Positions 1,698 through 61,350 of a stretch of 64,000 bases of DNA are shown here, in pieces. The stretch lies in IMG/VR virus record IMGVR_UViG_3300049793_000366, positions 372,001 to 436,000 of that record; one strand, given 5' to 3'. How positions within the stretch are numbered: the stretch's first letter is position 1; each line of letters begins with the position of its first letter. The translations under genes were made by a program, and so were the position numbers. The notes beneath the pieces were generated by a model. The model made no database searches, was not told where the DNA came from, and saw only the letters and a list, made by a program, of their open reading frames with translations.

Positions 1698-3047
1698 ATG
1701 TTAGAATCCAAGAGTATTTCACAGTTTTTAGCGGATGAGTATAAAGAGTTTTCTCTCTACACAATAGAATCGAGAGCTATTCCATCAGTAATTGATGGAT
1801 TTAAACCAACGCAAAGAAAAATCATACACGTATCAAGTGGTATATGGAAAACCGGATCTGAGAAGACCCTTAAAGTGTTTCAATTAGCCGGTAAAGTAGC
1901 CTCAGATGCATTCTATCATCACGGTAATGCTTCACTTGAGAGTTCAATAATAACAATGGCTCAGAAGTTTAAAAACAATATGCCATTATTAGAAGAAGAC
2001 GGACAGTTTGGTTCTCTTCGCGCCCCTGAGCCTGGTGCGCCACGTTATATTGGTACTAAATTAAATAAAAACTTCCGATTACTTTATAAGGATTTCGAAT
2101 TACTTAAATTCAAAGAAGAAGAGGGTGAAGTAATTGAACCAAGATATTTCTTACCAATTATTCCAACCGTTTTATTAAATGGTTCTTCTGGAATTGCGGT
2201 AGGGTTTTCATCAAACGTATTGAATAGAAATCCTAAGGACATCATCGAAGCTTGTCAAAATGTATTGAGAGATAAAAAAGTAGGTAGTATAAAACCATTT
2301 ATACCTGACTTCAAAGGAACATACATACAAGATACTGATAACCCGAAGCGTTGGATTATCAGAGGTATTTACGAAATTGTTAATACATCAACGGTTAAAA
2401 TATCAGAACTTCCACCATCAATGACATATGAAAAGTATGAAGAGATATTGGATGAATTAGTTGAGAAGAAAGCAATTGCTGGTTACGATGATAACAGTAA
2501 AGATAAAGTTGATTACACTATTAAGTTCAACAGAGAATCTTTAGCTAAATATCTTGAAGAAGATAGACTATGGAAATTACTAAGATTAGAAGAAGCAGAA
2601 ACAGAAATCTACACAACATTGGATGAGTTTGGTAAATTAAAAATATTTGACTCACCTGACCAAATAGTAAAATACTTTGTTGACTTTAGATTAATATACT
2701 ATCACAAGAGAAAGAAATTTATGTTGGATAAATTACAACATGAAGTAAATGTTTTATCGAATAGAGGTAAATTTATAAAAGCAATTTTAGATGGTAAGTT
2801 AGAAATAAAGAATAGAAAGAAGGAAGAACTTATTAATGATATTGCTAGTTTAGAATTAGCAAAGATTGATGATTCATTTGATTACCTTTTACGTATGCCA
2901 CTTTGGTCTTTAACTAAAGAGTTATTTGATAAATTAAGAGAAGACTTCAAGATAAAGAAGGAAGAAATTAATGAATTAAAGGCAACGGATCCGAAGGATA
3001 TGTACAACTTAGACCTATCTGAATTGAAGAAGAAAGTCGTAGGATAG
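1698..3047 (+). CDS. DNA topoisomerase II breakage-reunion subunit, T4 gp52/GyrA-like
   Basis: RAIPSVIDGFKPTQRK, YHHGNASL, GQFGSL...PRYI (catalytic Tyr), IPTVLLNGSSGIAVGFSS. Confidence 0.93.
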   Translation: MLESKSISQFLADEYKEFSLYTIESRAIPSVIDGFKPTQRKIIHVSSGIWKTGSEKTLKVFQLAGKVASDAFYHHGNASLESSIITMAQKFKNNMPLLEEDGQFGSLRAPEPGAPRYIGTKLNKNFRLLYKDFELLKFKEEEGEVIEPRYFLPIIPTVLLNGSSGIAVGFSSNVLNRNPKDIIEACQNVLRDKKVGSIKPFIPDFKGTYIQDTDNPKRWIIRGIYEIVNTSTVKISELPPSMTYEKYEEILDELVEKKAIAGYDDNSKDKVDYTIKFNRESLAKYLEEDRLWKLLRLEEAETEIYTTLDEFGKLKIFDSPDQIVKYFVDFRLIYYHKRKKFMLDKLQHEVNVLSNRGKFIKAILDGKLEIKNRKKEELINDIASLELAKIDDSFDYLLRMPLWSLTKELFDKLREDFKIKKEEINELKATDPKDMYNLDLSELKKKVVG

Positions 3048-3102: not shown

Positions 3103-4446
3103 ATGAAGTGGCTTAAAGAAAGAGATAAATTTAGTATGAACGAATCAGTCGTGGTAAAACACAACATACCAACATATGATGAGTGCGTTGAAATGTGCGC
3201 TCAGGAATCACCATGTTTCTATGAGACTAAGCTGGTTTTAGATGGATATAATATATCTGTCTTTAACTATCGTCTTGCTATGTATAGCGATTTCGTTAAA
3301 CCAATCGCAGATAAGCCACAAATCAAAGCATATGAAATGAGAGGATTAACTTTCGTCTTCAATGAAGATGGAACAATCTTTAATCGTTTCCTTTTACTTG
3401 AGAAGTTCTTTAACTTAAATCAAGTTCCAGAGTCTATGTATTCTATTGTTAAGAACTACAAAATAAAGTATGTTAATAACAAAGAAGATGGTTCTATTGC
3501 TTCATTTATCAAATTACCGAATGGTAAAATATACGGTAAGTCAAAGATGTCATTTGATAATGACCAAGCTGATGGTATCAACAGAGTTTACAAAACTAAT
3601 AAGCAAATCAAATCACTTGTTGATTGGTGCTTAGATAACGATATCGCGCCTATTTTTGAATATGTTGCACCACATAATAGAATAGTTCTTAGATACACAA
3701 CTGAGGACTTAATATTATTGCGTCTAAGAGACAATAAGACTGGTAGGCACATTGACTTAAAGGATCATTTAGATAAGATTGGTGAGATTAAAATCGCACC
3801 ATTTGAAGATGATTTCGATGGTCTTGACCACCTAATTGAATTAGTTGCAAAGCAAACTGATAAAGAGGGTTGTATTGTACAAGCTGTTGACGAAAATGGT
3901 CACGACTTCTTATTTAAGCTTAAAACACCATGGTATTGTGAGAGACACGGTTTATTGACTGAGGACTTATACCGTGAGCATATTATTATTGGTTATATCT
4001 TACAAGACAAAATTGATGATATTCTTGGACAAATCCCAGAAGAAGAGAAAGAGGCGCACGAAAGAATCAATAAAATCATCAAGATAGCCAAAAAAGCTAT
4101 TGCTGATAAAGAAGCTGAAATACTTGGTTTCTATCAAGTTTATTTAGATATGAATGATAGAAAAGCATTTGCATTAAAGTATCACAGACACCCGTTATTT
4201 GCTATGACTATGGCTTATGTTAAAGGTGTATATATGAAAACTCTTTCAAAAGAAGAGATTGCTGAAATGTACGAAGGTGACTTTGACCGTTTCGCTATGA
4301 TTCTTAATCAGTGCGAATCATATGAAATAGCTAAAGAATGGCTTAGAGAACAAACTAAGTGGTTGATGATGGCAAGAGATTGGCTTCAAGACAAAGACCC
4401 TACTTTATTTTTCATAGATCCTATCGAAAGTGATGAAGATAACTAA
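3103..4446 (+). CDS. RNA ligase, T4 Rnl1-like
   Basis: Motif I KEDGS, FEYVAPHNRIV, EGCIV, FKLKTPWY. Confidence 0.85.
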   Translation: MKWLKERDKFSMNESVVVKHNIPTYDECVEMCAQESPCFYETKLVLDGYNISVFNYRLAMYSDFVKPIADKPQIKAYEMRGLTFVFNEDGTIFNRFLLLEKFFNLNQVPESMYSIVKNYKIKYVNNKEDGSIASFIKLPNGKIYGKSKMSFDNDQADGINRVYKTNKQIKSLVDWCLDNDIAPIFEYVAPHNRIVLRYTTEDLILLRLRDNKTGRHIDLKDHLDKIGEIKIAPFEDDFDGLDHLIELVAKQTDKEGCIVQAVDENGHDFLFKLKTPWYCERHGLLTEDLYREHIIIGYILQDKIDDILGQIPEEEKEAHERINKIIKIAKKAIADKEAEILGFYQVYLDMNDRKAFALKYHRHPLFAMTMAYVKGVYMKTLSKEEIAEMYEGDFDRFAMILNQCESYEIAKEWLREQTKWLMMARDWLQDKDPTLFFIDPIESDEDN

Positions 4447-4473: not shown

Positions 4474-4513
4474 TTTTGGCTTTTTAATATATAATAAAAA
4501 GCAAATAATTCAT

Positions 4514-35256: not shown

Positions 35257-35361
35257 ATGTTAGTTATCAGTTCACATAAACATTTTAGTAAATCTAATAA
35301 GTGGTTTAGCCACTCTGGTTCGTGCTATGGCGTTTGTGTAAACTCTACTACAATGATGTAA
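35257..35361 (+). CDS. His/Lys/Phe/Trp/Ser leader peptide MLVISSHKHFSKSNKWFSHSGSCYGVCVNSTTMM
   Basis: Core HKHFSKSNKWFSHS ahead of a terminator and the His/Lys/Trp/Phe/Ser tRNA array. Confidence 0.8.
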   Translation: MLVISSHKHFSKSNKWFSHSGSCYGVCVNSTTMM

Positions 35362-35697: not shown

Positions 35698-35771
35698 TGA
35701 GGGGTAGCTCAGTGGTAAGAGCGCCGGGACGGAAAACCCGGAGGTCGTTGGTTCGAATCTAACCCCCTCTA
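35698..35771 (+). tRNA. Initiator-like tRNA body with an 8-nt anticodon loop ACGGAAAA
   Basis: U1-U72 mismatch, GAGGGG/CCCCTC, CCGGG/CCCGG stem, AGGTC variable loop. Confidence 0.6.
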
Positions 35772-35779
35772 CAAAGAAT

Positions 35780-36131: not shown

Positions 36132-36698
36132 ATGAAACGCATTTTATATATGAAAGAGGAAATATTAAAACTAAGGAGCGAAGGCAAAACATTCAATGAG
36201 ATTAAAACAATATTGAACTGTTCAAAATCTACAATATCATATTATTGTAGTGATGGACAAAAAGAAAAAACTATAAAAAGAACAAAAAAAAGAAGAGAAA
36301 ATTTAATACTTAGTAAACTTGAAAAATTCAAAAGCAGAAAAATAAAAAATACTAAAGAATCTGTTAGAAAATTTCAAAAAAGAGATAATGATATAAAGAA
36401 GAGAGGTAAAGTAAATAACAATTTAAATACTACATTTAGCTGGACTGACGTTATTGAAAAATTTGGTGAAAATACTAATTGTTATTTATCTGGTGAGAAA
36501 ATAAATTTATATGAAAAAGGTTATAGCTTTGACCATATAATACCAGTAAGCTTGGGTGGAGATAATAGCTTAGATAACCTTGGTGTATCAAACGAAAAGG
36601 TTAATAGAATGAAAACTGATATGATACCAGATGAATTTATAAACTGGTGTAGAAAAATATTAGAATTCAATGGATATAAAGTTGAAAAATTCAATTAA
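36132..36698 (+). mobile_element. Free-standing HNH homing endonuclease with N-terminal HTH
   Basis: CYLSGE...SFDHIIPVSLGGDNSLDNL...N.MK; inserted in a tRNA array. Confidence 0.82.
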
Positions 36699-36699
36699 A

Positions 36700-36738
36700 A
36701 TGAAAACAATGAAAACTGAAATAAAACGAAAACGATAG
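36700..36738 (+). CDS. Lys-rich mini-ORF MKTMKTEIKRKR
   Basis: ATG..TAG directly abutting a hairpin before tRNA-Lys. Confidence 0.5.
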   Translation: MKTMKTEIKRKR

Positions 36739-36767
36739 TTCCGTAGTTGAATGCTACGGACGAATAT

Positions 36768-36870: not shown

Positions 36871-36903
36871 ATGAAAACTATAAAACGAAAATATAAACGG
36901 TAA
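36871..36903 (+). CDS. Lys-rich mini-ORF MKTIKRKYKR
   Basis: ATG..TAA directly abutting a hairpin before tRNA-Lys. Confidence 0.5.
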   Translation: MKTIKRKYKR

Positions 36904-36937
36904 GACGTGGTTCGCCTTGAGCTACGTCACCGAAAAT

Positions 36938-37121: not shown

Positions 37122-38324
37122 ATGGAAACAGTAAATTGTAGAATACTAAACAGAAGACTTCACGGAAAGTCTGCGTTCTTAGATGTGTTAGCGAATGGTC
37201 AACATTTACAAACATATCTTAACATAAATGAAGTTGAGAACTTCACTGAGTTGACAGAATTACCAATAGGTTCTTTCATTAGAATTAACGGGGAATACTT
37301 CACAACCAGAACTGGTCACTACACGTTGAGAATAGATAATGCTCATGTATTATTTATACCTAACAGAATACTACCAGTAGTTCAAGACGATGGTGAGAAT
37401 AGATTCAATGAAGTAACAAACGTTGAATCTATTAGAAGAAGAAGATACCTTCAAACGATATTGAATGCTGAGGAAAGGCAAACATTCGTTACAAGGTCAA
37501 GAGTTATAAATACAATAAGGAATTTCTTTATACAAAGAGATTACTTAGAAGTAGAAACTCCAATCTTACAACCAGTTTACGGTGGTGCTGAAGCTACACC
37601 ATTCGTAACAAGATTCGAATCACTTGATTCAGACTTCTATCTAAGGATAGCACCTGAATTATATTTGAGAAGAATGATAATTGGTGGGTATGATAGGGTG
37701 TTTGAGATTGGTAGAAACTTTAGAAATGAAGGACTATCTAACAGACATAACCCGGAGTTTACTTTCATTGAGGTGTATACCGCATTTGAAAATTATAACT
37801 TTAGTATGGATGTAGTAACTGAATTGTTTACAGAAATATTCAATCAGTTCGGTGAAGTTGAGTATCAGGGTAACAGAATTAATTTCTCTAACATAGAGAG
37901 AAGAAGTTACACTGAGTTAGTAGCTCAACACTGTAATGTTGATACCACAACATTAACAGATAATGAATTGGTAGCGTTGTTTGAAAATGAAGTTGAAGGT
38001 AATTTAATTAACCCAACTATTGTATATGATTACCCAGCTAGTGTAAGTCCTTTAGCGCAAGTTAGAGAAGATAACCCAAGCATAGCTGAACGTTTTGAAA
38101 TATATGTTGGTGGAATGGAAATTGGAAATGCATACTCTGAGTTGAACGATGTGAATAGACACATCGAGAACATTGGAACAGAAGATGCAGACTTCGTAGA
38201 GGCACTCGAATATGGAATGCCACCTACAACAGGAATAGGACTCGGTATAGATAGAATTGTAATGATTCTTACAAACCGAGCAATAAGAGACGTTATATTC
38301 TTCCCAGCGATGAGAAGAGCATAA
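37122..38324 (+). CDS. lysS: Lysyl-tRNA synthetase class II, shortened
   Basis: YGGAEATPF, YLRIAPELYL, FRNEG..RHNPEF, RFEIYVGGMEIGNAYSELND, YGMPPTTGIGLGIDR. Confidence 0.93.
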   Translation: METVNCRILNRRLHGKSAFLDVLANGQHLQTYLNINEVENFTELTELPIGSFIRINGEYFTTRTGHYTLRIDNAHVLFIPNRILPVVQDDGENRFNEVTNVESIRRRRYLQTILNAEERQTFVTRSRVINTIRNFFIQRDYLEVETPILQPVYGGAEATPFVTRFESLDSDFYLRIAPELYLRRMIIGGYDRVFEIGRNFRNEGLSNRHNPEFTFIEVYTAFENYNFSMDVVTELFTEIFNQFGEVEYQGNRINFSNIERRSYTELVAQHCNVDTTTLTDNELVALFENEVEGNLINPTIVYDYPASVSPLAQVREDNPSIAERFEIYVGGMEIGNAYSELNDVNRHIENIGTEDADFVEALEYGMPPTTGIGLGIDRIVMILTNRAIRDVIFFPAMRRA

Positions 38325-38331
38325 CAAAGAT

Positions 38332-38413
38332 ACATTCGCTCATTGGCGTGACCAGCCGGCTCCAACCCGGTAATGCGTAAGCGTGGTTGAGGGTTCGAAT
38401 CCCTACGAGTGTA
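38332..38413 (+). tRNA. tRNA-Trp(CCA)-like with long variable arm and reduced D arm
   Basis: ACATTCG/CGAGTGT, GCCGG-CTCCAAC-CCGGT, variable arm ATGC-GTAA-GCGT. Confidence 0.6.
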
Positions 38414-38493: not shown

Positions 38494-38578
38494 GGAAGAT
38501 TGGCAGAGTGGTTTATCGTCTTTGTTTGCTAAACAAATGGGTGTAACAGCCCCACAGGTTCGAATCCTGTATCTTCCG
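38494..38578 (+). tRNA. tRNA-Ser(GCU)
   Basis: GGAAGAT/ATCTTCC, G73, TTTGT-TTGCTAA-ACAAA, long variable arm. Confidence 0.9.
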
Positions 38579-38642
38579 CAAGCAATCAGTGTGGTAACGT
38601 ACTGATATAATTTTTATATATACTATAAAATGTATTATAAAA

Positions 38643-39383
38643 ATGGAATGTAATGTGTGTAGTAAATCTTTTAAAACCGAAAGTGGTTTTAAGAGCCATA
38701 CTAAGAAGTCATGTGATAAACATATAAATAAATGTAGAAATAAAAATTGCCCAAAGTGTGGTTTTAAGATAGCAAATAAAATAGAAAGTCACATAAACAT
38801 ATGTGATGGGTCTGGACCAAGAAGATTAAAAAAAAGAAGAGAAGGTGGGCATCAGTGGGCGAAGGGTAAAACATATGAAGAGCTTTTTGGAAAAGAGAAA
38901 GCACAAGAACGTATAGAAGAGCTTAAATTAAATTATAAAGAAAACCCAATCATTATAGATGATGATGTGGAACAAGAGAGAAGGAATAAGATAAGAATAA
39001 AGATAATTGAACGCTATGCTAATGGTTGGGAATCTACTGCTGGTCGATGTAAGAAGATTTCATATTTTAGTAATGTAGCAGGTAACATTAAAGTAGATGG
39101 TACTTGGGAATTATCAGTAGCAAAATACTTAGATAGCTTAGGTGTAAATTGGATTAGAAATAAAAAACGATTTAAATATTTCAACTCTATTAAAAATAGA
39201 ACATCAACTTATTGTCCTGATTTTTATGTAGAAGAATGGGGTTGTTTTATAGAAGTGAAGGGATATAAAACAGAACTCGATGATATAAAATGGGCAAACT
39301 TTAAAGACAAATTGGAAATTTGGGATAAAGATAAGTTAACGAGTTTAGGAATAGATATAAGATATAAAAAGAAAAGAGTATGA
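38643..39383 (+). mobile_element. Putative homing endonuclease, PD-(D/E)xK type with zinc-finger N-terminus
   Basis: YCPDFYV..WGCFIEVKGY; KGKTYEELFG repeat-like segment. Confidence 0.72.
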
Positions 39384-40102
39384 AAAAGTATTTAATAGGA
39401 ATTCAACCAACAGGAAAGATACATATTGGTAATTATCTTGGTTGCTTGAAGAAAGGGCTTGAGTTACAAGAGAAAGGTAACGATGTAACTTTTCTTATAG
39501 CTAACTATCATTCACTAACGACTGATAGCTATACTGATGAAACTGAGAAGGAATTGGTAAGACTTGGTTGTAAAAATGTGAAAAGACAAACACCTGAGTA
39601 CACTGAATTGTTTTTCAAACTATGTTGTAATATGAACTTAGGTACTCTTACTAAGATGCCTCAGTACAAAGACAAGAAAGAAACAGCTAAGTATGACATG
39701 GGTATATTACTATATCCAGTTCTTATGACGGCAGATATTATGATGAATGATCCTGACGTTGTAATTGTTGGTAAAGACCAAGTACCACATTTAGAATTGT
39801 GTAATGATATTTCTAAAAGAGTAGGTGGTAGAGAATATGCTTATGAGTTTGGTGATGTAGATAAGATTATGTCACTATCAGATCCAACTAAGAAGATGTC
39901 AAAATCTTTGGGTGATAATCATGTGATGTATGTATTCGATGATGATTACGAAAAGAAAATGAAGAAAGCCAATGCTAATGAAGATGGCTTAAATAATCTT
40001 AGAAAAATAGCTACGTGCCTTGATTTACCAGTAGATTCATACATAATGAACATTGATTTGAAAATGGCAATTGCTGATAAAATGAAAAAATTATTTAATT
40101 AA
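39380..40102 (+). CDS. trpS: Tryptophanyl-tRNA synthetase, 240 aa
   Basis: GIQPTGKIHIGNYLG, YPVLMTADI, VGKDQVPHLE, KMSKS. Confidence 0.92.
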   Translation: MKKYLIGIQPTGKIHIGNYLGCLKKGLELQEKGNDVTFLIANYHSLTTDSYTDETEKELVRLGCKNVKRQTPEYTELFFKLCCNMNLGTLTKMPQYKDKKETAKYDMGILLYPVLMTADIMMNDPDVVIVGKDQVPHLELCNDISKRVGGREYAYEFGDVDKIMSLSDPTKKMSKSLGDNHVMYVFDDDYEKKMKKANANEDGLNNLRKIATCLDLPVDSYIMNIDLKMAIADKMKKLFN

Positions 40103-40145
40103 TTTGCATAATAGACAAAACATAACTATATTTGCTTAATATATA
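40103..40145 (+). promoter_or_regulatory. Dual promoter
   Basis: TTTG 40103, TATATTTG 40127-40134, AATATATA 40138-40145. Confidence 0.75.
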
Positions 40146-40150
40146 ACAAT

Positions 40151-40219
40151 ATGAAAACAACAATGACAATAACAATTTCTCGCTCGCGTTCATCGCGTTC
40201 ACTACCTCTGGTGGTCTGA
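40151..40219 (+). CDS. Ser/Arg leader peptide MKTTMTITISRSRSSRSLPLVV
   Basis: SRSRSSRS core; all Ser codons TCN, all Arg codons CGY. Confidence 0.85.
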   Translation: MKTTMTITISRSRSSRSLPLVV

Positions 40220-40246
40220 GATTGTATTGTCTAATAAATAATACTT

Positions 40247-40278
40247 AACCCTTGGACTTCACTGTTCAAGGGTTTTTT
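40247..40278 (+). terminator. Attenuator terminator
   Basis: aacccttgga/ttcaagggtt + T tract; leader-end ggtctgag pairs with cttggact. Confidence 0.8.
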
Positions 40279-40292
40279 GTTATGTGTAAATT

Positions 40293-40379
40293 GGAAGAGT
40301 AAAGCGTAATTGGTATCGCCCCAGTCTTGAAAACTGGTATCGGGAAACTGGTGTGCAGGTTCGAGTCCTGTCTCTTCCG
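40293..40379 (+). tRNA. tRNA-Ser(UGA)
   Basis: GGAAGAG/CTCTTCC, CCAGT-CTTGAAA-ACTGG, long variable arm. Confidence 0.92.
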
Positions 40380-40384
40380 CAAAT

Positions 40385-40456
40385 GGTCGCATCGTCCAAC
40401 GGATAGGATAACATCTTGCGAAGGTGTTGATGAAGGTTCGAATCCTTCTGCGACTA
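40385..40456 (+). tRNA. tRNA-Arg(GCG)
   Basis: GGTCGCA/TGCGACT, ACATC-TTGCGAA-GGTGT. Confidence 0.85.
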
Positions 40457-40462
40457 CAATAA

Positions 40463-40552
40463 GAGTGGGTGACTGAGATAGGTTTAAGGTGACCGGGCAT
40501 GAAACCCCGGTGTCCCGTGAAGGGACCGTAGGTTCGAATCCTACTCCACTTT
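40463..40552 (+). tRNA. Ser-like type II tRNA with an 8-nt anticodon loop CATGAAAC
   Basis: GAGTGGG/TCCACTT, ACCGGG/CCCGGT stem, variable arm GTCCC-GTGAA-GGGAC. Confidence 0.6.
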
Positions 40553-40561
40553 TATTAATTA

Positions 40562-40646
40562 GGAAGTTTGGTAGAGTGGCCGATTGCGGTAGTCTTGAAA
40601 ACTACTGAGGGTAATACCTCCGAGAGTTCGAATCTCTCAGCTTCCT
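40562..40646 (+). tRNA. tRNA-Ser(UGA)
   Basis: GGAAGTT/AGCTTCC, GTAGT-CTTGAAA-ACTAC; U73. Confidence 0.88.
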
Positions 40647-40651
40647 CAAAT

Positions 40652-40725
40652 GCACACGTAGCTCAACTGGATAGAGTATCTGACTACGAATCAGAAGGTT
40701 GTAGGTTCGAATCCTACCGAGTGTA
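40652..40725 (+). tRNA. tRNA-Arg(ACG)
   Basis: TCTGA-CTACGAA-TCAGA. Confidence 0.9.
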
Positions 40726-40730
40726 CTAAT

Positions 40731-40807
40731 GCCTTAGTAATGGCCACCGCTTCGAACGGTGAGACGCATAACGGATGAAAATGCAGGTTCGAATCCTGTC
40801 TAAGGCT
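40731..40807 (+). tRNA. D-armless tRNA-Arg(UCG)-like RNA with long variable region
   Basis: Perfect GCCTTAG/CTAAGGC, only TA-ATGGC before CACCG-CTTCGAA-CGGTG, canonical T arm. Confidence 0.6.
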
Positions 40808-40812
40808 CAACT

Positions 40813-40898
40813 GGAAAGGTACCCAAGTGGACTAAGGGGACTGCTTGGAAAGCAGTTAGGATGTAACAGTCGCAAGAGTTCGAATCTCTTTCTTTCCG
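40813..40898 (+). tRNA. tRNA-Ser(GGA)
   Basis: GGAAAGG/TCTTTCC, ACTGC-TTGGAAA-GCAGT, long variable arm. Confidence 0.9.
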
Positions 40899-41010
40899 CA
40901 CTGGGCGCAAGCGGGTTCAAACACCGCCTTTGGAGATAGCTACCAATGAAGCATTTGTGGTGATGCGGCTCAATTTATTTATTATTTAAAATTTATCCGT
41001 ATATTTAACT

Positions 41011-42282
41011 ATGCTACAACTAAACTACATTCGAGAAAATAAAGACGAAGTTATTAAACGTCTTGCTATTAAAAATTTAATAGATGCTGATGTCACAATC
41101 AATACACTTATTGATAAAGACAATGAGCGAAAAAGAATTAAGAAGGAAGGTGATGATACCAGAGGTGAACTTAATGCAATCACTGATACTATTCGTGATT
41201 TAGTAAAAGCTGGTAGGAAAGATGAAATAGCAAATGAGAAAGAGAAGACCACTAAGCTTAAACTAAAATTAGAAATGCTTGATGAAGCATTTAAGTTAAT
41301 AGATAGTGATATCTATGAAACACTAATTCGCCTACCAAACATTGCACACGAAAGTGTACCGAAAGGAAAAACACCAGAGGATAATGATATTATTTATGAG
41401 TATGGTGAAAAGCCAACTCTATACGATGGTGCTAAACCACATTGGGATTTAACTACAAAGTATAATCTGATTGACTTCGAATTAGGTGTTAAGATAGCTG
41501 GTGCTGGATTCCCTGTTTATAAAGACAAAGGAGCAAAATTACAAAGAGCTTTGATAAATTATTTTCTTGATAAAGCAACAGAGAATGGTTACATCGAAGT
41601 ACAACCACCAATTGTAGTAAATGAACAAAGTGGTTTTGGTACTGGTCAACTACCAGACAAAGAAGGTCAGATGTATCACATTGGTGAAGATAAGTTATAT
41701 TTAATACCAACTGCTGAAGTTCCTATTACAAATATCTATCGCGATGTTATATTAAACGAAGATGAATTACCAATTAAGAATTGTGGTTATACACCATGTT
41801 TCAGAAGAGAAGCGGGTAGTTATGGTAAAGATGTAAGAGGGTTAAATCGTTTACATCAATTTGATAAAGTAGAAATTGTACAAGTAGTTAAGCCAGAAAA
41901 TAGCTATCTTGCACTAGAAGAAATGCGCGAGTATGTAGCTCAGTTATTGAGAGAATTAGAACTACCATTTAGAACATTGAAATTATGTGGTGGTGACATG
42001 AGCTTCGCGAGTGCATTGACATATGATATGGAAGTATGGAGTGCGGCACAAGAAAAATGGTTAGAAGTAAGTAGTGTGAGTAACTTTGAAACATTTCAAA
42101 CAAATAGATTGAAGTGTAGATATAGAACAACAGATGGTAATAAATTACCACATACGTTAAATGGTAGTGCGTTAGCCTTACCAAGAATCGTAGCCGCTAT
42201 ACTTGAGAATAACCAAACAGAAGCGGGTATAAAAGTACCCAAAGTGCTAATACCATATACCAGATTTGAACTTATAAACTAA
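41011..42282 (+). CDS. serS: Seryl-tRNA synthetase, Bacteroidota-like
   Basis: GTGQLPDKEGQMY, LIPTAEVP, CFRREAGS, HQFDKVE, EVSSVSN, HTLNGSALALPR. Confidence 0.96.
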   Translation: MLQLNYIRENKDEVIKRLAIKNLIDADVTINTLIDKDNERKRIKKEGDDTRGELNAITDTIRDLVKAGRKDEIANEKEKTTKLKLKLEMLDEAFKLIDSDIYETLIRLPNIAHESVPKGKTPEDNDIIYEYGEKPTLYDGAKPHWDLTTKYNLIDFELGVKIAGAGFPVYKDKGAKLQRALINYFLDKATENGYIEVQPPIVVNEQSGFGTGQLPDKEGQMYHIGEDKLYLIPTAEVPITNIYRDVILNEDELPIKNCGYTPCFRREAGSYGKDVRGLNRLHQFDKVEIVQVVKPENSYLALEEMREYVAQLLRELELPFRTLKLCGGDMSFASALTYDMEVWSAAQEKWLEVSSVSNFETFQTNRLKCRYRTTDGNKLPHTLNGSALALPRIVAAILENNQTEAGIKVPKVLIPYTRFELIN

Positions 42283-42308: not shown

Positions 42309-42770
42309 ATGGATATAGTAACTGATAATCTTTTACTGGTTGATGATAGTGAATCAGACCAAGAGCTAATAAGAAGGGCTTTTGAAACGCTGGAAATTTC
42401 AAATGAACTTATCATAATAGGTAATGCTCCTGATGCGCTAAAATATCTAAGAAGAACAAGTGTTCAACCAATGTTAATAATATGTGACATGGATATGCCA
42501 GGTATGTCTGGTTTAGACTTAAAGAGAGAAATACACAATGACTTAGAATTAAGAAAGAAGTGTATACCATTTATATTTATAACTGGTGGTGAGTCAGAAG
42601 AAACTATTAATAATGCCTTCTTTGAGTACTGTGTTCAGGGATATTTTCCAAAGTGTAATAATTTCGAAGACACTGTTAAAATGTTAGAGCTTATTATAAA
42701 TTATTGGTCAGCCTGTAGATTCCCACATAATACTTTCAATTTGATTAAGAGGGGAAAACAACATAGGTAG
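42309..42770 (+). CDS. Stand-alone response regulator receiver
   Basis: LLVDDSE, IICDMDMPGMSG (phospho-Asp), FIT, conserved Lys in YFPK. Confidence 0.88.
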   Translation: MDIVTDNLLLVDDSESDQELIRRAFETLEISNELIIIGNAPDALKYLRRTSVQPMLIICDMDMPGMSGLDLKREIHNDLELRKKCIPFIFITGGESEETINNAFFEYCVQGYFPKCNNFEDTVKMLELIINYWSACRFPHNTFNLIKRGKQHR

Positions 42771-43124: not shown

Positions 43125-43151
43125 TATTGATATAACTATATAATCATTATG

Positions 43152-43179
43152 AAGCCCAGACGAGAATCTGGGCTTTTTT
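43152..43179 (+). terminator. Attenuator terminator of hisS-pheS
   Basis: aagcccaga/tctgggctt + T tract; leader ctcgaactggg pairs with cccagacgag. Confidence 0.85.
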
Positions 43180-47436: not shown

Positions 47437-47532
47437 ATGAACACTTTAATCTACATAGGGTATATAGCGGAAGGCGGTTATGAAGCGGGGAGCTTCGTGA
47501 ATGGCTTGGTTTTACCTATGCGTAAAGTGTGA
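47437..47532 (+). CDS. Tyr/Ile/Gly/Ala/Glu leader peptide MNTLIYIGYIAEGGYEAGSFVNGLVLPMRKV
   Basis: Core YIGYIAEGGYEAG with two ATA codons. Confidence 0.85.
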   Translation: MNTLIYIGYIAEGGYEAGSFVNGLVLPMRKV

Positions 47533-59986: not shown

Positions 59987-60060
59987 GGCGCAATCGTCTA
60001 CCGGAAGGACGCTACCCCATTTCAGGGTAGAAACGTATGGTTCGAATCCTGCTTGCGCTA
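59987..60060 (+). tRNA. Glu-like tRNA-like RNA with 6-bp anticodon stem and bulged T stem
   Basis: GGCGCAA/TTGCGCT; CTACCC-CATTTCA-GGGTAG; GTA[T]GG/CCTGC. Confidence 0.6.
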
Positions 60061-60518: not shown

Positions 60519-61272
60519 TTGGGCAGTATAGTGTCCTACACAAATCTTCGGGTTTGTGTGAAAATAAAGCTGGTAACAGTCTATAAAGCAAACGTAGAGT
60601 TTGCGACTTCTTCACGGGAGTTTAACTATAAAATACTTAGTATGTCTTTGATGGACGAATGTTCAATGAGATATCATCATCCAACTATGGTGATTGCGTC
60701 AGAAATGATTACAAGAAAGGTAGGGTATTATGTGCGAAATGTCCAAACATTAGTGCGTGTGCTATCTGATTAAGTTATACAACGTATAGTTTATATTCGC
60801 AAGGGTATTTATTATACATGGGCGACTGAAGCAGACGTGAGCTGGAAACTCACAGAAGGGCGTTTAGTATTTTGTTCTCAAAAGGAACGAAGCTATACCA
60901 CACAGGCGTCCTTCATACAAATAGTTGTTATCTAACATGATTTTGAAATATCAAAAAAGCAAAATCTGTGTGGCGCTGGAGTCGAAAGGTCTCTAATTCC
61001 ATCCGTTGCGAAACGAAGATGGAGTCTAATATCCCGCAAGGATATGGATTTAGCTAAGAAAAATCTAGTGGGCGCAACCCTTAGTCAGTTCGCAAGACTG
61101 AATAGACAGAGTAGCAGTTGAGTAGACAAACTGGTCAAACAGTTCTAGCGATACGAGTGATTACCGTAAGGAATCGAGACTGACAGAATACTTATCGCAA
61201 GGTGAGTGGATAATGAGAGAACCAATAATGCTCAGAAAGATTTGTCGACCAAAGCTATAATCTCAAGCTTTT
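60519..61272 (+). ncRNA. Large ornate ncRNA, GOLLD-like (about 750 nt)
   Basis: Five CGCAA-loop hairpins, UUCG/GCGA/GAAA loops, long-range helices (GAAGGGCG/CGTCCTTC, CACACAG/CTGTGTG); tRNA-flanked phage context; family call is from memory. Confidence 0.6.
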
Positions 61273-61276
61273 TTAC

Positions 61277-61350
61277 GGCGTGTTCGTCTATCGGAAGGAC
61301 GCTACCCCATTTCAGGGTAGAAACGTATGGTTCGAATCCTGCACACGCTA
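61277..61350 (+). tRNA. Glu-like tRNA-like RNA, near copy of 59987-60060
   Basis: Identical from GGAAGGAC through the T arm; acceptor GGCGTGT/ACACGCT co-varies. Confidence 0.6.

Follow-up and report, generated by a model that had tools for sequence, protein, structure and literature searches.

A stretch of 64,000 nucleotides (nt) from IMG/VR virus record IMGVR_UViG_3300049793_000366 (positions 372,001 to 436,000 of that record; hereafter the window) carries a small open reading frame (ORF), rich in serine and arginine codons, that precedes a predicted intrinsic terminator, an array of serine (Ser) and arginine (Arg) transfer RNA (tRNA) genes and a gene for seryl-tRNA synthetase (SerRS). We interpret this Ser/Arg unit, with good confidence, as a ribosome-mediated (leader-peptide) transcription attenuator that would control a phage Ser/Arg tRNA and SerRS operon; our confidence that its control codons are strictly tuned to the isoacceptors encoded downstream is somewhat lower. 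The parts of such a device can all be recognized here: a short ORF on the same strand, a cluster of control codons, an intrinsic terminator, an antiterminator strand that a stalled ribosome would free, and a region 1 able to capture region 2. That the leader is translated and that the hairpin terminates transcription we infer from the sequence and from folding models.

The leader ORF (Table 1), which encodes MKTTMTITISRSRSSRSLPLVV, is the sole ORF candidate ending just 5' of the terminator, and its codons 10 to 17 form an unbroken run of Ser and Arg. A sequence-only reading of this DNA had claimed that the Ser codons of this control block are all TCN and the Arg codons all CGY, and both direct inspection and a script bear this out (Ser: TCT, TCG, TCA, TCG, TCA; Arg: CGC, CGT, CGT). 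All eight codons can be decoded by tRNAs of the array that follows, compared with 4.3 expected (P = 0.003), and the homologous leader in the huge phage genome LR756502 gives P = 0.0015 in the same comparison. Under the codon usage of the window, in which TCN makes up 0.71 of Ser codons and CGN and CGY make up 0.255 and 0.171 of Arg codons, the chance of drawing three CGY codons in three is 0.005, and that of drawing five TCN codons in five is 0.18. The array contains no reader of AGY or AGR codons, as the same reading had held, even when ARAGORN thresholds are lowered to 80%. Its inventory of the array fared less evenly: each listed Ser and Arg gene apart from the Arg(UCG)-like RNA is supported by ARAGORN and Rfam, but a third gene with a UGA anticodon, at 40462-40553, had been missed.

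The folding of the leader transcript offers a plausible switch. Across nine homologues the terminator stem is paired in 94% of alignment cells with three compensatory pairs, and none of 500 shuffles reaches the observed covariation. Upstream, the minimum-free-energy fold contains a hairpin (1:2) that encloses the control block, to which we assign the role of an anti-antiterminator or pause hairpin. The candidate antiterminator joins a strand that holds the leader's stop codon to the terminator 5' arm, enclosing an inner hairpin (40224-40230 with 40238-40244). When a ribosome footprint of assumed size was moved along the leader codon by codon, with the transcript folded up to the terminator loop, the window antiterminator was present with the A site at ORF nt 19 to 43 and gone further downstream. 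Extending this analysis to 21 leaders (the five of the window and 16 from relatives) showed that only with the A site in or before the block of matched codons does an upstream strand capture the terminator 5' arm, and that the zone of sequestration ends within three codons of the end of that block in 20 of the 21. Pairing in the antiterminator helix of the relatives is 87%, three of the pairs covary, and the register lies two columns from that of the window.

Several features of this model weigh against it. The register used by the window is not conserved in the relatives (40% paired); the window helix is short (7 bp, two of them G-U pairs), and the alternative fold is worth about -12 kcal/mol. 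Under the assumed footprint, the last two control codons lie outside the competent zone. The Fisher test on stall zones and several of our counts take in homologous leaders, which are not independent. Finally, the terminator is present in every full-length minimum-energy fold, and the antiterminator appears only while the terminator 3' arm is untranscribed; the switch must therefore be kinetic. Minimum-energy folding of the whole leader, together with masked folds of the full transcript, was tried as a model of the switch and rejected, the terminator being mostly kept.

Because the control codons correspond to downstream anticodons, an untranslated leader RNA might instead bind tRNA directly through them, in the manner of a T-box specifier. 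This is barely credible. The leader region matches neither the T-box covariance model nor any other riboswitch model in our Rfam scans, and the ATG, reading frame and stop codon of homologous leaders are conserved while their lengths differ by whole codons (24 versus 25, and 21 versus 22). The stop codon, moreover, lies inside the antiterminator strand, a position that makes sense only for a translating ribosome.

Translation-dependent attenuation would operate as follows. Transcription would start a few nucleotides 5' of the leader ATG, and a ribosome would translate the leader with the polymerase ahead of it. With TCN- and CGY-reading aminoacyl-tRNAs plentiful, the ribosome would reach the TGA and cover 40214-40220, or hairpin 1:2 would form after its departure; with that strand covered or captured, the terminator (40247-40274) would fold and transcription would stop before the tRNA genes. 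Were the cognate tRNAs scarce or uncharged, the ribosome would stall within codons 10 to 16, leaving 40214-40220 to pair with the terminator 5' arm, and the resulting antiterminator would let the polymerase read on through the array to SerRS. Since the unit would make the very tRNAs by which its control codons are decoded, the circuit would feed back on itself and act as a supply-on-demand controller for whole codon families.

The scarcity sensed during infection could arise from decay of the host tRNA pool, from the codon demand of the phage or from host anticodon nucleases. A more pointed version of the same mechanism holds that its purpose is to detect an attack on the host tRNA pool, by anticodon nucleases of defence systems or through a shut-off of host tRNA synthesis, and to supply replacement tRNAs for only the codon families that are hit. 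That each codon family has its own sensor whose output is replacement tRNAs, and that the phage sets of tRNAs and synthetases are near-complete, agree with such a purpose; CGN codons are also rare in the phage's own genes, and therefore its own demand alone is a weak reason for encoding three CGN readers. One published account advances phage tRNAs as a counter to tRNA-targeting defences (PMC10264068). Nothing in the sequence points to a cause of scarcity, however, and no defence or anti-defence gene was linked to the units. We regard this purpose as possible but doubtful; it refines the attenuator explanation rather than replacing its mechanism.

The Ser/Arg unit does not stand alone. A script that searched the window for a hairpin and T run followed by a tRNA found that all five arrays that open a tRNA cluster share one layout, in which a short ORF precedes a strong hairpin and T run and a tRNA gene follows within about 50 nt; each of the five has exactly one short ORF candidate just 5' of the hairpin. 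Codon content of the leaders mirrors the arrays behind them (Table 1): the actual assignment of leaders to arrays is the best of 120 permutations for the five units of the window and the best of 5040 for seven units of LR756502. Related huge phages (LR756502, LR756501 and relatives from IMG/VR and metagenomes) contribute over 30 more units and add Lys, Leu, Lys/Arg, Asn/Val/Thr and Trp/His types. The units carry synthetases of cognate type, with a class II enzyme after Asp/Glu/Pro, a Gln/Glu-type enzyme after Gln, a class II D/K/N enzyme after Lys, and a Trp/Tyr-type enzyme after the His/Lys/Trp/Phe unit, as SerRS does in the Ser/Arg unit. Among more distant relatives, the Ser/Arg tRNAs of loci L010, L011 and L013 (related loci are cited here by L number) have no recognizable leader.

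These units bear on a simpler explanation, that the hairpin merely ends the upstream Trp/Tyr-type synthetase gene (ORF 39380-40102), with a fortuitous small ORF beside it and independently transcribed tRNAs. Although the terminator does lie 145 nt past the stop of that gene, and short ORFs abound in AT-rich DNA such as the window (33.6% G+C), this account is very improbable: a promoter-like element separates the upstream gene from the ORF, only about 14 nt separate the end of the T run from the first tRNA at 40293, and eight consecutive Ser/Arg codons have a chance of about 2e-8 by our arithmetic from the residue frequencies of the window. The permutation results in two genomes, and the coincidence of stall zone and matched codons in 21 leaders, likewise oppose it. 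We think it reasonably likely that the whole set amounts to a genome-wide system of attenuators, one per tRNA/synthetase operon and each written in the codons of its own tRNAs, which would act as a closed-loop, isoacceptor-resolved supply controller; it would be the first instance of tRNA genes under ribosome-mediated attenuation, and it might also have a built-in capacity to detect depletion or cleavage of host tRNAs.

Two sequence elements recur upstream of the leaders. The first combines TTTG with TATATTTG, resembles the Bacteroidetes -33/-7 type and is a putative promoter of the Ser/Arg unit. A TAnnTTTG motif lies within 75 nt 5' of 10 of 22 leaders (11 sites, where a base-composition estimate gives about one), and this enrichment is confined to the region 5' of leaders, as the window as a whole shows none (50 sites versus an estimated 43 or so). 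The second, a TAATATATAA box located 4 nt 5' of the Ser/Arg leader ATG, precedes every window leader but one, which has a variant instead, and several ordinary ORFs as well; boxes 0 to 22 nt 5' of start codons are found at 4485, 19599, 34601, 35244, 36122, 40137, 47406 and 63400. The box may serve as an initiation region or as a phage promoter whose mRNAs would be leaderless or nearly so, and it is only a guess from its position that the phage leaders are leaderless. A pattern scan for the TAATATATAA box together with ATGAAAAC returned mostly unrelated contigs, with the leader layout at only about ten loci.

Whether these devices sense codon families or amino acids is addressed most strongly by Arg, whose codons divide into two families. 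In 12 Ser/Arg or Lys/Arg leaders before arrays that hold only ACG, GCG or UCG Arg anticodons, 26 of 30 Arg codons are CGN, compared with a genomic CGN share of 9-25%, and the four AGR exceptions all fall outside the control blocks. Leaders before arrays that begin with Arg(UCU), by comparison, use AGA in eight of nine Arg codons. Codon family and anticodon family are thus associated by Fisher's test across all leaders (P = 6e-5) and when a single leader per type is kept (P = 0.007). Other leaders show finer correspondence. The Lys/Arg leader of L032 uses CGT, CGC and CGA before two Arg(ACG) genes, and these three codons are the set read by an inosine-34 Arg(ACG) tRNA under standard wobble rules; the Leu leader of L002 contains all six Leu codons before tRNAs with UAG, GAG, CAA and UAA anticodons; and ATA codons in leaders pair with Ile(UAU). 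Where an array tRNA carries U34, leaders favor the G-ending (NNG) codon that it can read only by wobble (TCG, GCG, GGG, CCG, GTG; 22 of 38, versus five expected), a choice with which the sensor would respond most sensitively to the concentration of tRNA.

For Ser, AGY and TCN codons occur side by side in each of the ten other Ser/Arg leaders, whose arrays hold the AGY reader Ser(GCU); the unit of the window has neither AGY codons nor Ser(GCU). Where the nearest leader type has its three AGT codons, the window has ATT, TCG and TCG. The Ser(GCU) gene of the window, now outside the unit (Table 1), is nearly identical to one within the Ser/Arg array of L004. This pattern is suggestive of the window having lost its leader AGY codons and array Ser(GCU) after the tRNA was relocated to 38494. 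Locus L023, in which only Ser(UGA) and Ser(GGA) follow a leader with four TCN codons, provides an independent parallel. The Ser case consists of this one relocation event and one parallel, and we grade it suggestive because TCN versus AGY counts reach significance neither by themselves, as given above, nor against the relatives (Fisher P = 0.15).

Further observations tell against a strict reading of isoacceptor tuning. The CGA found 3' of the block in relatives falls within the antiterminator strand, so that RNA pairing rather than decoding may fix it; His/Lys/Phe/Trp leaders keep conserved AGY codons even where no downstream Ser tRNA is visible; and the arrays of L002 and L012 hold Ser(CGA), yet their leaders are without TCG. 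One might accordingly propose that the attenuator is real but senses the general supply or charging of Ser and Arg, its codons having been chosen as rare, slow or G+C-rich. Rare codons are indeed enriched in leaders (TCG, CGC, GGG, GCG), folding places a small CGCG hairpin within the control block, the SerRS of the operon charges all Ser isoacceptors, and the Ser counts alone fall short as noted. We nonetheless judge this proposal unlikely. The AGA used before Arg(UCU) arrays, in place of the rare CGN, is the commonest Arg codon, a usage incompatible with a simple bias toward rare codons; the Leu leader of L002 contains every Leu codon before a full set of Leu tRNAs; the change from AGT to TCG at two orthologous Ser positions occurs in the sole lineage whose array lost Ser(GCU); and L023 repeats the restriction to TCN.

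In favoring sensing of specific isoacceptors "rather than amino-acid pools," the sequence-only reading was correct that leader codons track the downstream isoacceptors, strongly for Arg and suggestively for Ser, but it posed a false choice. A stalled ribosome reads aminoacyl-tRNA, a quantity that depends on tRNA, SerRS and amino acid together, and the contrast between isoacceptor and pool is therefore too sharp. That the operon also encodes SerRS suggests a correction that includes charging.

The same reading placed Ser(GCU) under the control of the leader at 35257. The gene and the leader both exist, and the leader does contain AGT, AGT and AGC, together with five TCN codons that had gone unmentioned. 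Control of one by the other finds little backing, however. They are separated by an HNH gene preceded by a TAATATATAA box of its own, by two small Lys-rich ORFs that each have a hairpin, and by a gene for lysyl-tRNA synthetase (LysRS); the AGY share of the leader (three of eight Ser codons) equals the background; and the LR756502 orthologue keeps its AGT codons although Ser(GCU) is located in the other array there.

Table 1. Features of the Ser/Arg unit and related elements (window coordinates; scores in bits).
Feature	Position	Strand	Details
Promoter-like element	40103-40134	+	TTTG 40103-40106, 20-nt spacer, TATATTTG 40127-40134
TAATATATAA box	40137-40146	+	4 nt 5' of leader ATG
Leader ORF	40151-40219	+	ATG at 40151; 22 codons + TGA (40217-40219)
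Hairpin 1:2	40165-40231	+	40165-40179 pairs with 40218-40231
Control block, codons 10-17	40178-40201	+	TCT CGC TCG CGT TCA TCG CGT TCA
Candidate antiterminator	40214-40257	+	GUCUGAG 40214-40220 pairs with CUUGGAC 40251-40257
Predicted intrinsic terminator	40247-40278	+	hairpin 40247-40274; 11-bp stem, 6-nt loop, six-T run
tRNA-Ser(UGA), atypical	40293-40380	+	ARAGORN; Rfam tRNA 36 bits; Sec-type model 44.9 bits, under its cut-off
tRNA-Arg(GCG)	40385-40457	+	ARAGORN; 59 bits
Class II Ser-type tRNA, UGA in 8-nt anticodon loop	40462-40553	+	ARAGORN; 29.2 bits; fold
tRNA-Ser(UGA)	40562-40647	+	ARAGORN; 47.2 bits
tRNA-Arg(ACG)	40652-40726	+	ARAGORN; 65 bits
Arg(UCG)-like RNA without D arm	40730-40809	+	fold; about 21-nt connector 5' of T arm
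tRNA-Ser(GGA)	40813-40899	+	ARAGORN; 52.4 bits
SerRS, 423 aa	41011-42282	+	Pfam Seryl_tRNA_N, tRNA-synt_2b
Response-regulator receiver-domain gene	42309-42770	+	Pfam Response_reg; stand-alone
tRNA-Ser(GCU), AGY reader	38494-38579	+	ARAGORN; outside Ser/Arg unit
Leader	19613		Pro, Asp codons; before Asp, Glu, Pro tRNAs
Leader	21928		six Gln codons; before four Gln tRNAs
Leader	35257		His, Lys, Phe, Trp codons; before His, Lys, Phe, Trp tRNAs
Leader	47437		Tyr, Ile (ATA), Gly, Ala, Glu codons; before Glu, Tyr, Gly, Ile(UAU), Ala tRNAs

The logic of the Ser/Arg unit recalls the leader-peptide attenuators of bacterial operons (trpL, hisL, leuL, thrL, ilvL and pheL), in which a short ORF with clustered control codons is followed by alternative hairpins ending in a terminator; thr and ilv have leaders that respond to more than one amino acid, and leu uses rare codons for sensitivity. 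As in the trp, his, leu, thr and ilv systems, the phage leader combines clustered control codons and an intrinsic terminator with a four-region logic (1:2, 2:3, 3:4). Unlike them, the phage units would regulate tRNA genes and a synthetase rather than biosynthetic enzymes, their output would feed directly on the decoding step that is sensed, they are phage-encoded in at least five copies per genome with each copy assigned to a different tRNA set, and their codons follow isoacceptor content. Rfam leader families give no counterpart in a gathering-threshold scan, the only match of any kind being to His_leader, with 21.1 bits where 49 are required (E = 0.68). Another parallel is the pheM leader of Escherichia coli pheST, which places a synthetase under leader-peptide attenuation by codons for its cognate amino acid. 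There too a gene for translation supply stands behind a cognate-codon leader, although that operon is cellular, has no tRNA genes and concerns one amino acid. A further candidate precedent, an attenuator before the E. coli tRNA-Phe gene pheV, was set aside, the upstream region in K-12 having neither leader nor terminator.

T-boxes share with the phage units the sensing of one tRNA's state through codon-anticodon contact, the antitermination of synthetase genes and isoacceptor specificity, but they bind uncharged tRNA directly and need no ribosome. In Bacillus subtilis, a serine sensor in sinR distinguishes the TCN and AGY families as its signal, and synonymous swaps from TCN to AGY abolish the response; it differs in acting on protein yield, with no terminator and no link to a tRNA gene (PMC3862929). 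Leaderless poly-Cys short ORFs of mycobacteria act as attenuators of cysteine-related operons (bioRxiv 10.1101/834739), and resemble the phage leaders in having a very short or absent 5' untranslated region before a small regulatory ORF rich in one type of codon. A full-text literature search found no published description of leaders before tRNA genes. The novelty here lies in the target and in the loop that it closes: tRNA genes together with a synthetase, in a phage, in many parallel copies that are each tuned to their own tRNAs. A classic bacterial control device has apparently been applied to tRNA genes for the first time.

The reasons for which phages carry tRNA genes, and the use to which these are put, have been argued over for decades, and a broader question is how tRNA supply is matched to codon demand. 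If our interpretation is correct, a sensor of decoding speed at chosen codons that makes the matching tRNAs would be a direct mechanism for joining supply to demand, and huge phages would regulate, not merely carry, a private translation apparatus. The units would also offer synthetic biology a natural modular part with a codon-specific read-out of tRNA availability, for which variants among the relatives (gain or loss of AGY, split versus merged leaders, CGN versus AGA) provide ready-made controls.

Within the Ser/Arg unit, no terminator is predicted between the array and SerRS, the next on the plus strand lying at 43151-43176, and the unit probably ends with the receiver-domain gene. The Arg(UCG)-like RNA that the sequence-only reading had proposed is genuine: its fold shows an acceptor arm, an anticodon arm (loop CUUCGAA) and a T arm, it lacks a D arm, and it has a counterpart of the same design in L024 (11609-11688), although no Rfam model matches it. 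A possible D-arm-less version of Trp(CCA), also without a tRNA model match, lies at 38324-38409, directly 5' of Ser(GCU). Class II Ser-type UGA tRNAs with anticodon loops of 8 or 9 nt are kept across relatives (40462-40553 and 35698-35772 in the window; 15089-15173 in L006; 10099-10186 in L008), and could be four-base decoders or decoys; ARAGORN labels a second odd tRNA "(ggaa)". Anticodons that are unusual for bacteria include Arg(GCG), Gly(ACC) and Ile(UAU), at 40385, 48089 and 48871 in the window.

The window is part of a 508-kb IMG/VR contig, and its arrays hold 39 tRNA genes by ARAGORN; Pfam identifies several aminoacyl-tRNA synthetase genes and Rfam one GOLLD RNA. Among named relatives it is closest to the curated huge phage genomes LR756502.1 (642 kb) and LR756501.1 (735 kb), with nucleotide identities in the synthetase gene of 81% and 71%, respectively. 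Judged by its close similarity to these 642-735 kb genomes, the source is a phage of the Mahaphage-type huge group. The largest phages of the LR756502/LR756501 type were predicted by their authors to replicate in Bacteroidetes (PMC7162821), which probably host the related Mahaphage-type phages. A locus search with the SerRS protein as query matched the source contig alone.

Several further observations concern the organization of the arrays. Leader content tracks array partitioning: a single composite leader (Tyr, Ile, Gly, Ala, Glu; 47437-47532) precedes one long array in the window, whereas in LR756502 (L014) separate Glu/Tyr and Ile/Gly/Ala leaders (2949-3041 and 3657-3740) precede the two halves of the same array. 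Two tiny Lys/Arg-rich ORFs, of 12 codons (36700-36760) and 10 codons (36871-36928), each stand before a single Lys(UUU) gene; they combine Lys AAA with Arg CGA or CGG, each is followed by a hairpin with no T run, and the 5' arm of the first hairpin repeats the 5' end of its own tRNA. These may represent a different, terminator-less form of control. The window tRNAs with no preceding leader are a lone Lys(UUU) gene at 59987 and a gene at 61277-61350, which begins 8 nt after the full-length GOLLD RNA (232 bits; both within 60855-61350). Homing-endonuclease genes inside tRNA arrays split units, as with the HNH gene at 36132-36698 and an ORF in L006 (15384-15965) that looks, by eye only, like GIY-YIG. 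The more distant relative L010 carries, at 3122, a tRNA with anticodon CUA, that of a TAG suppressor.

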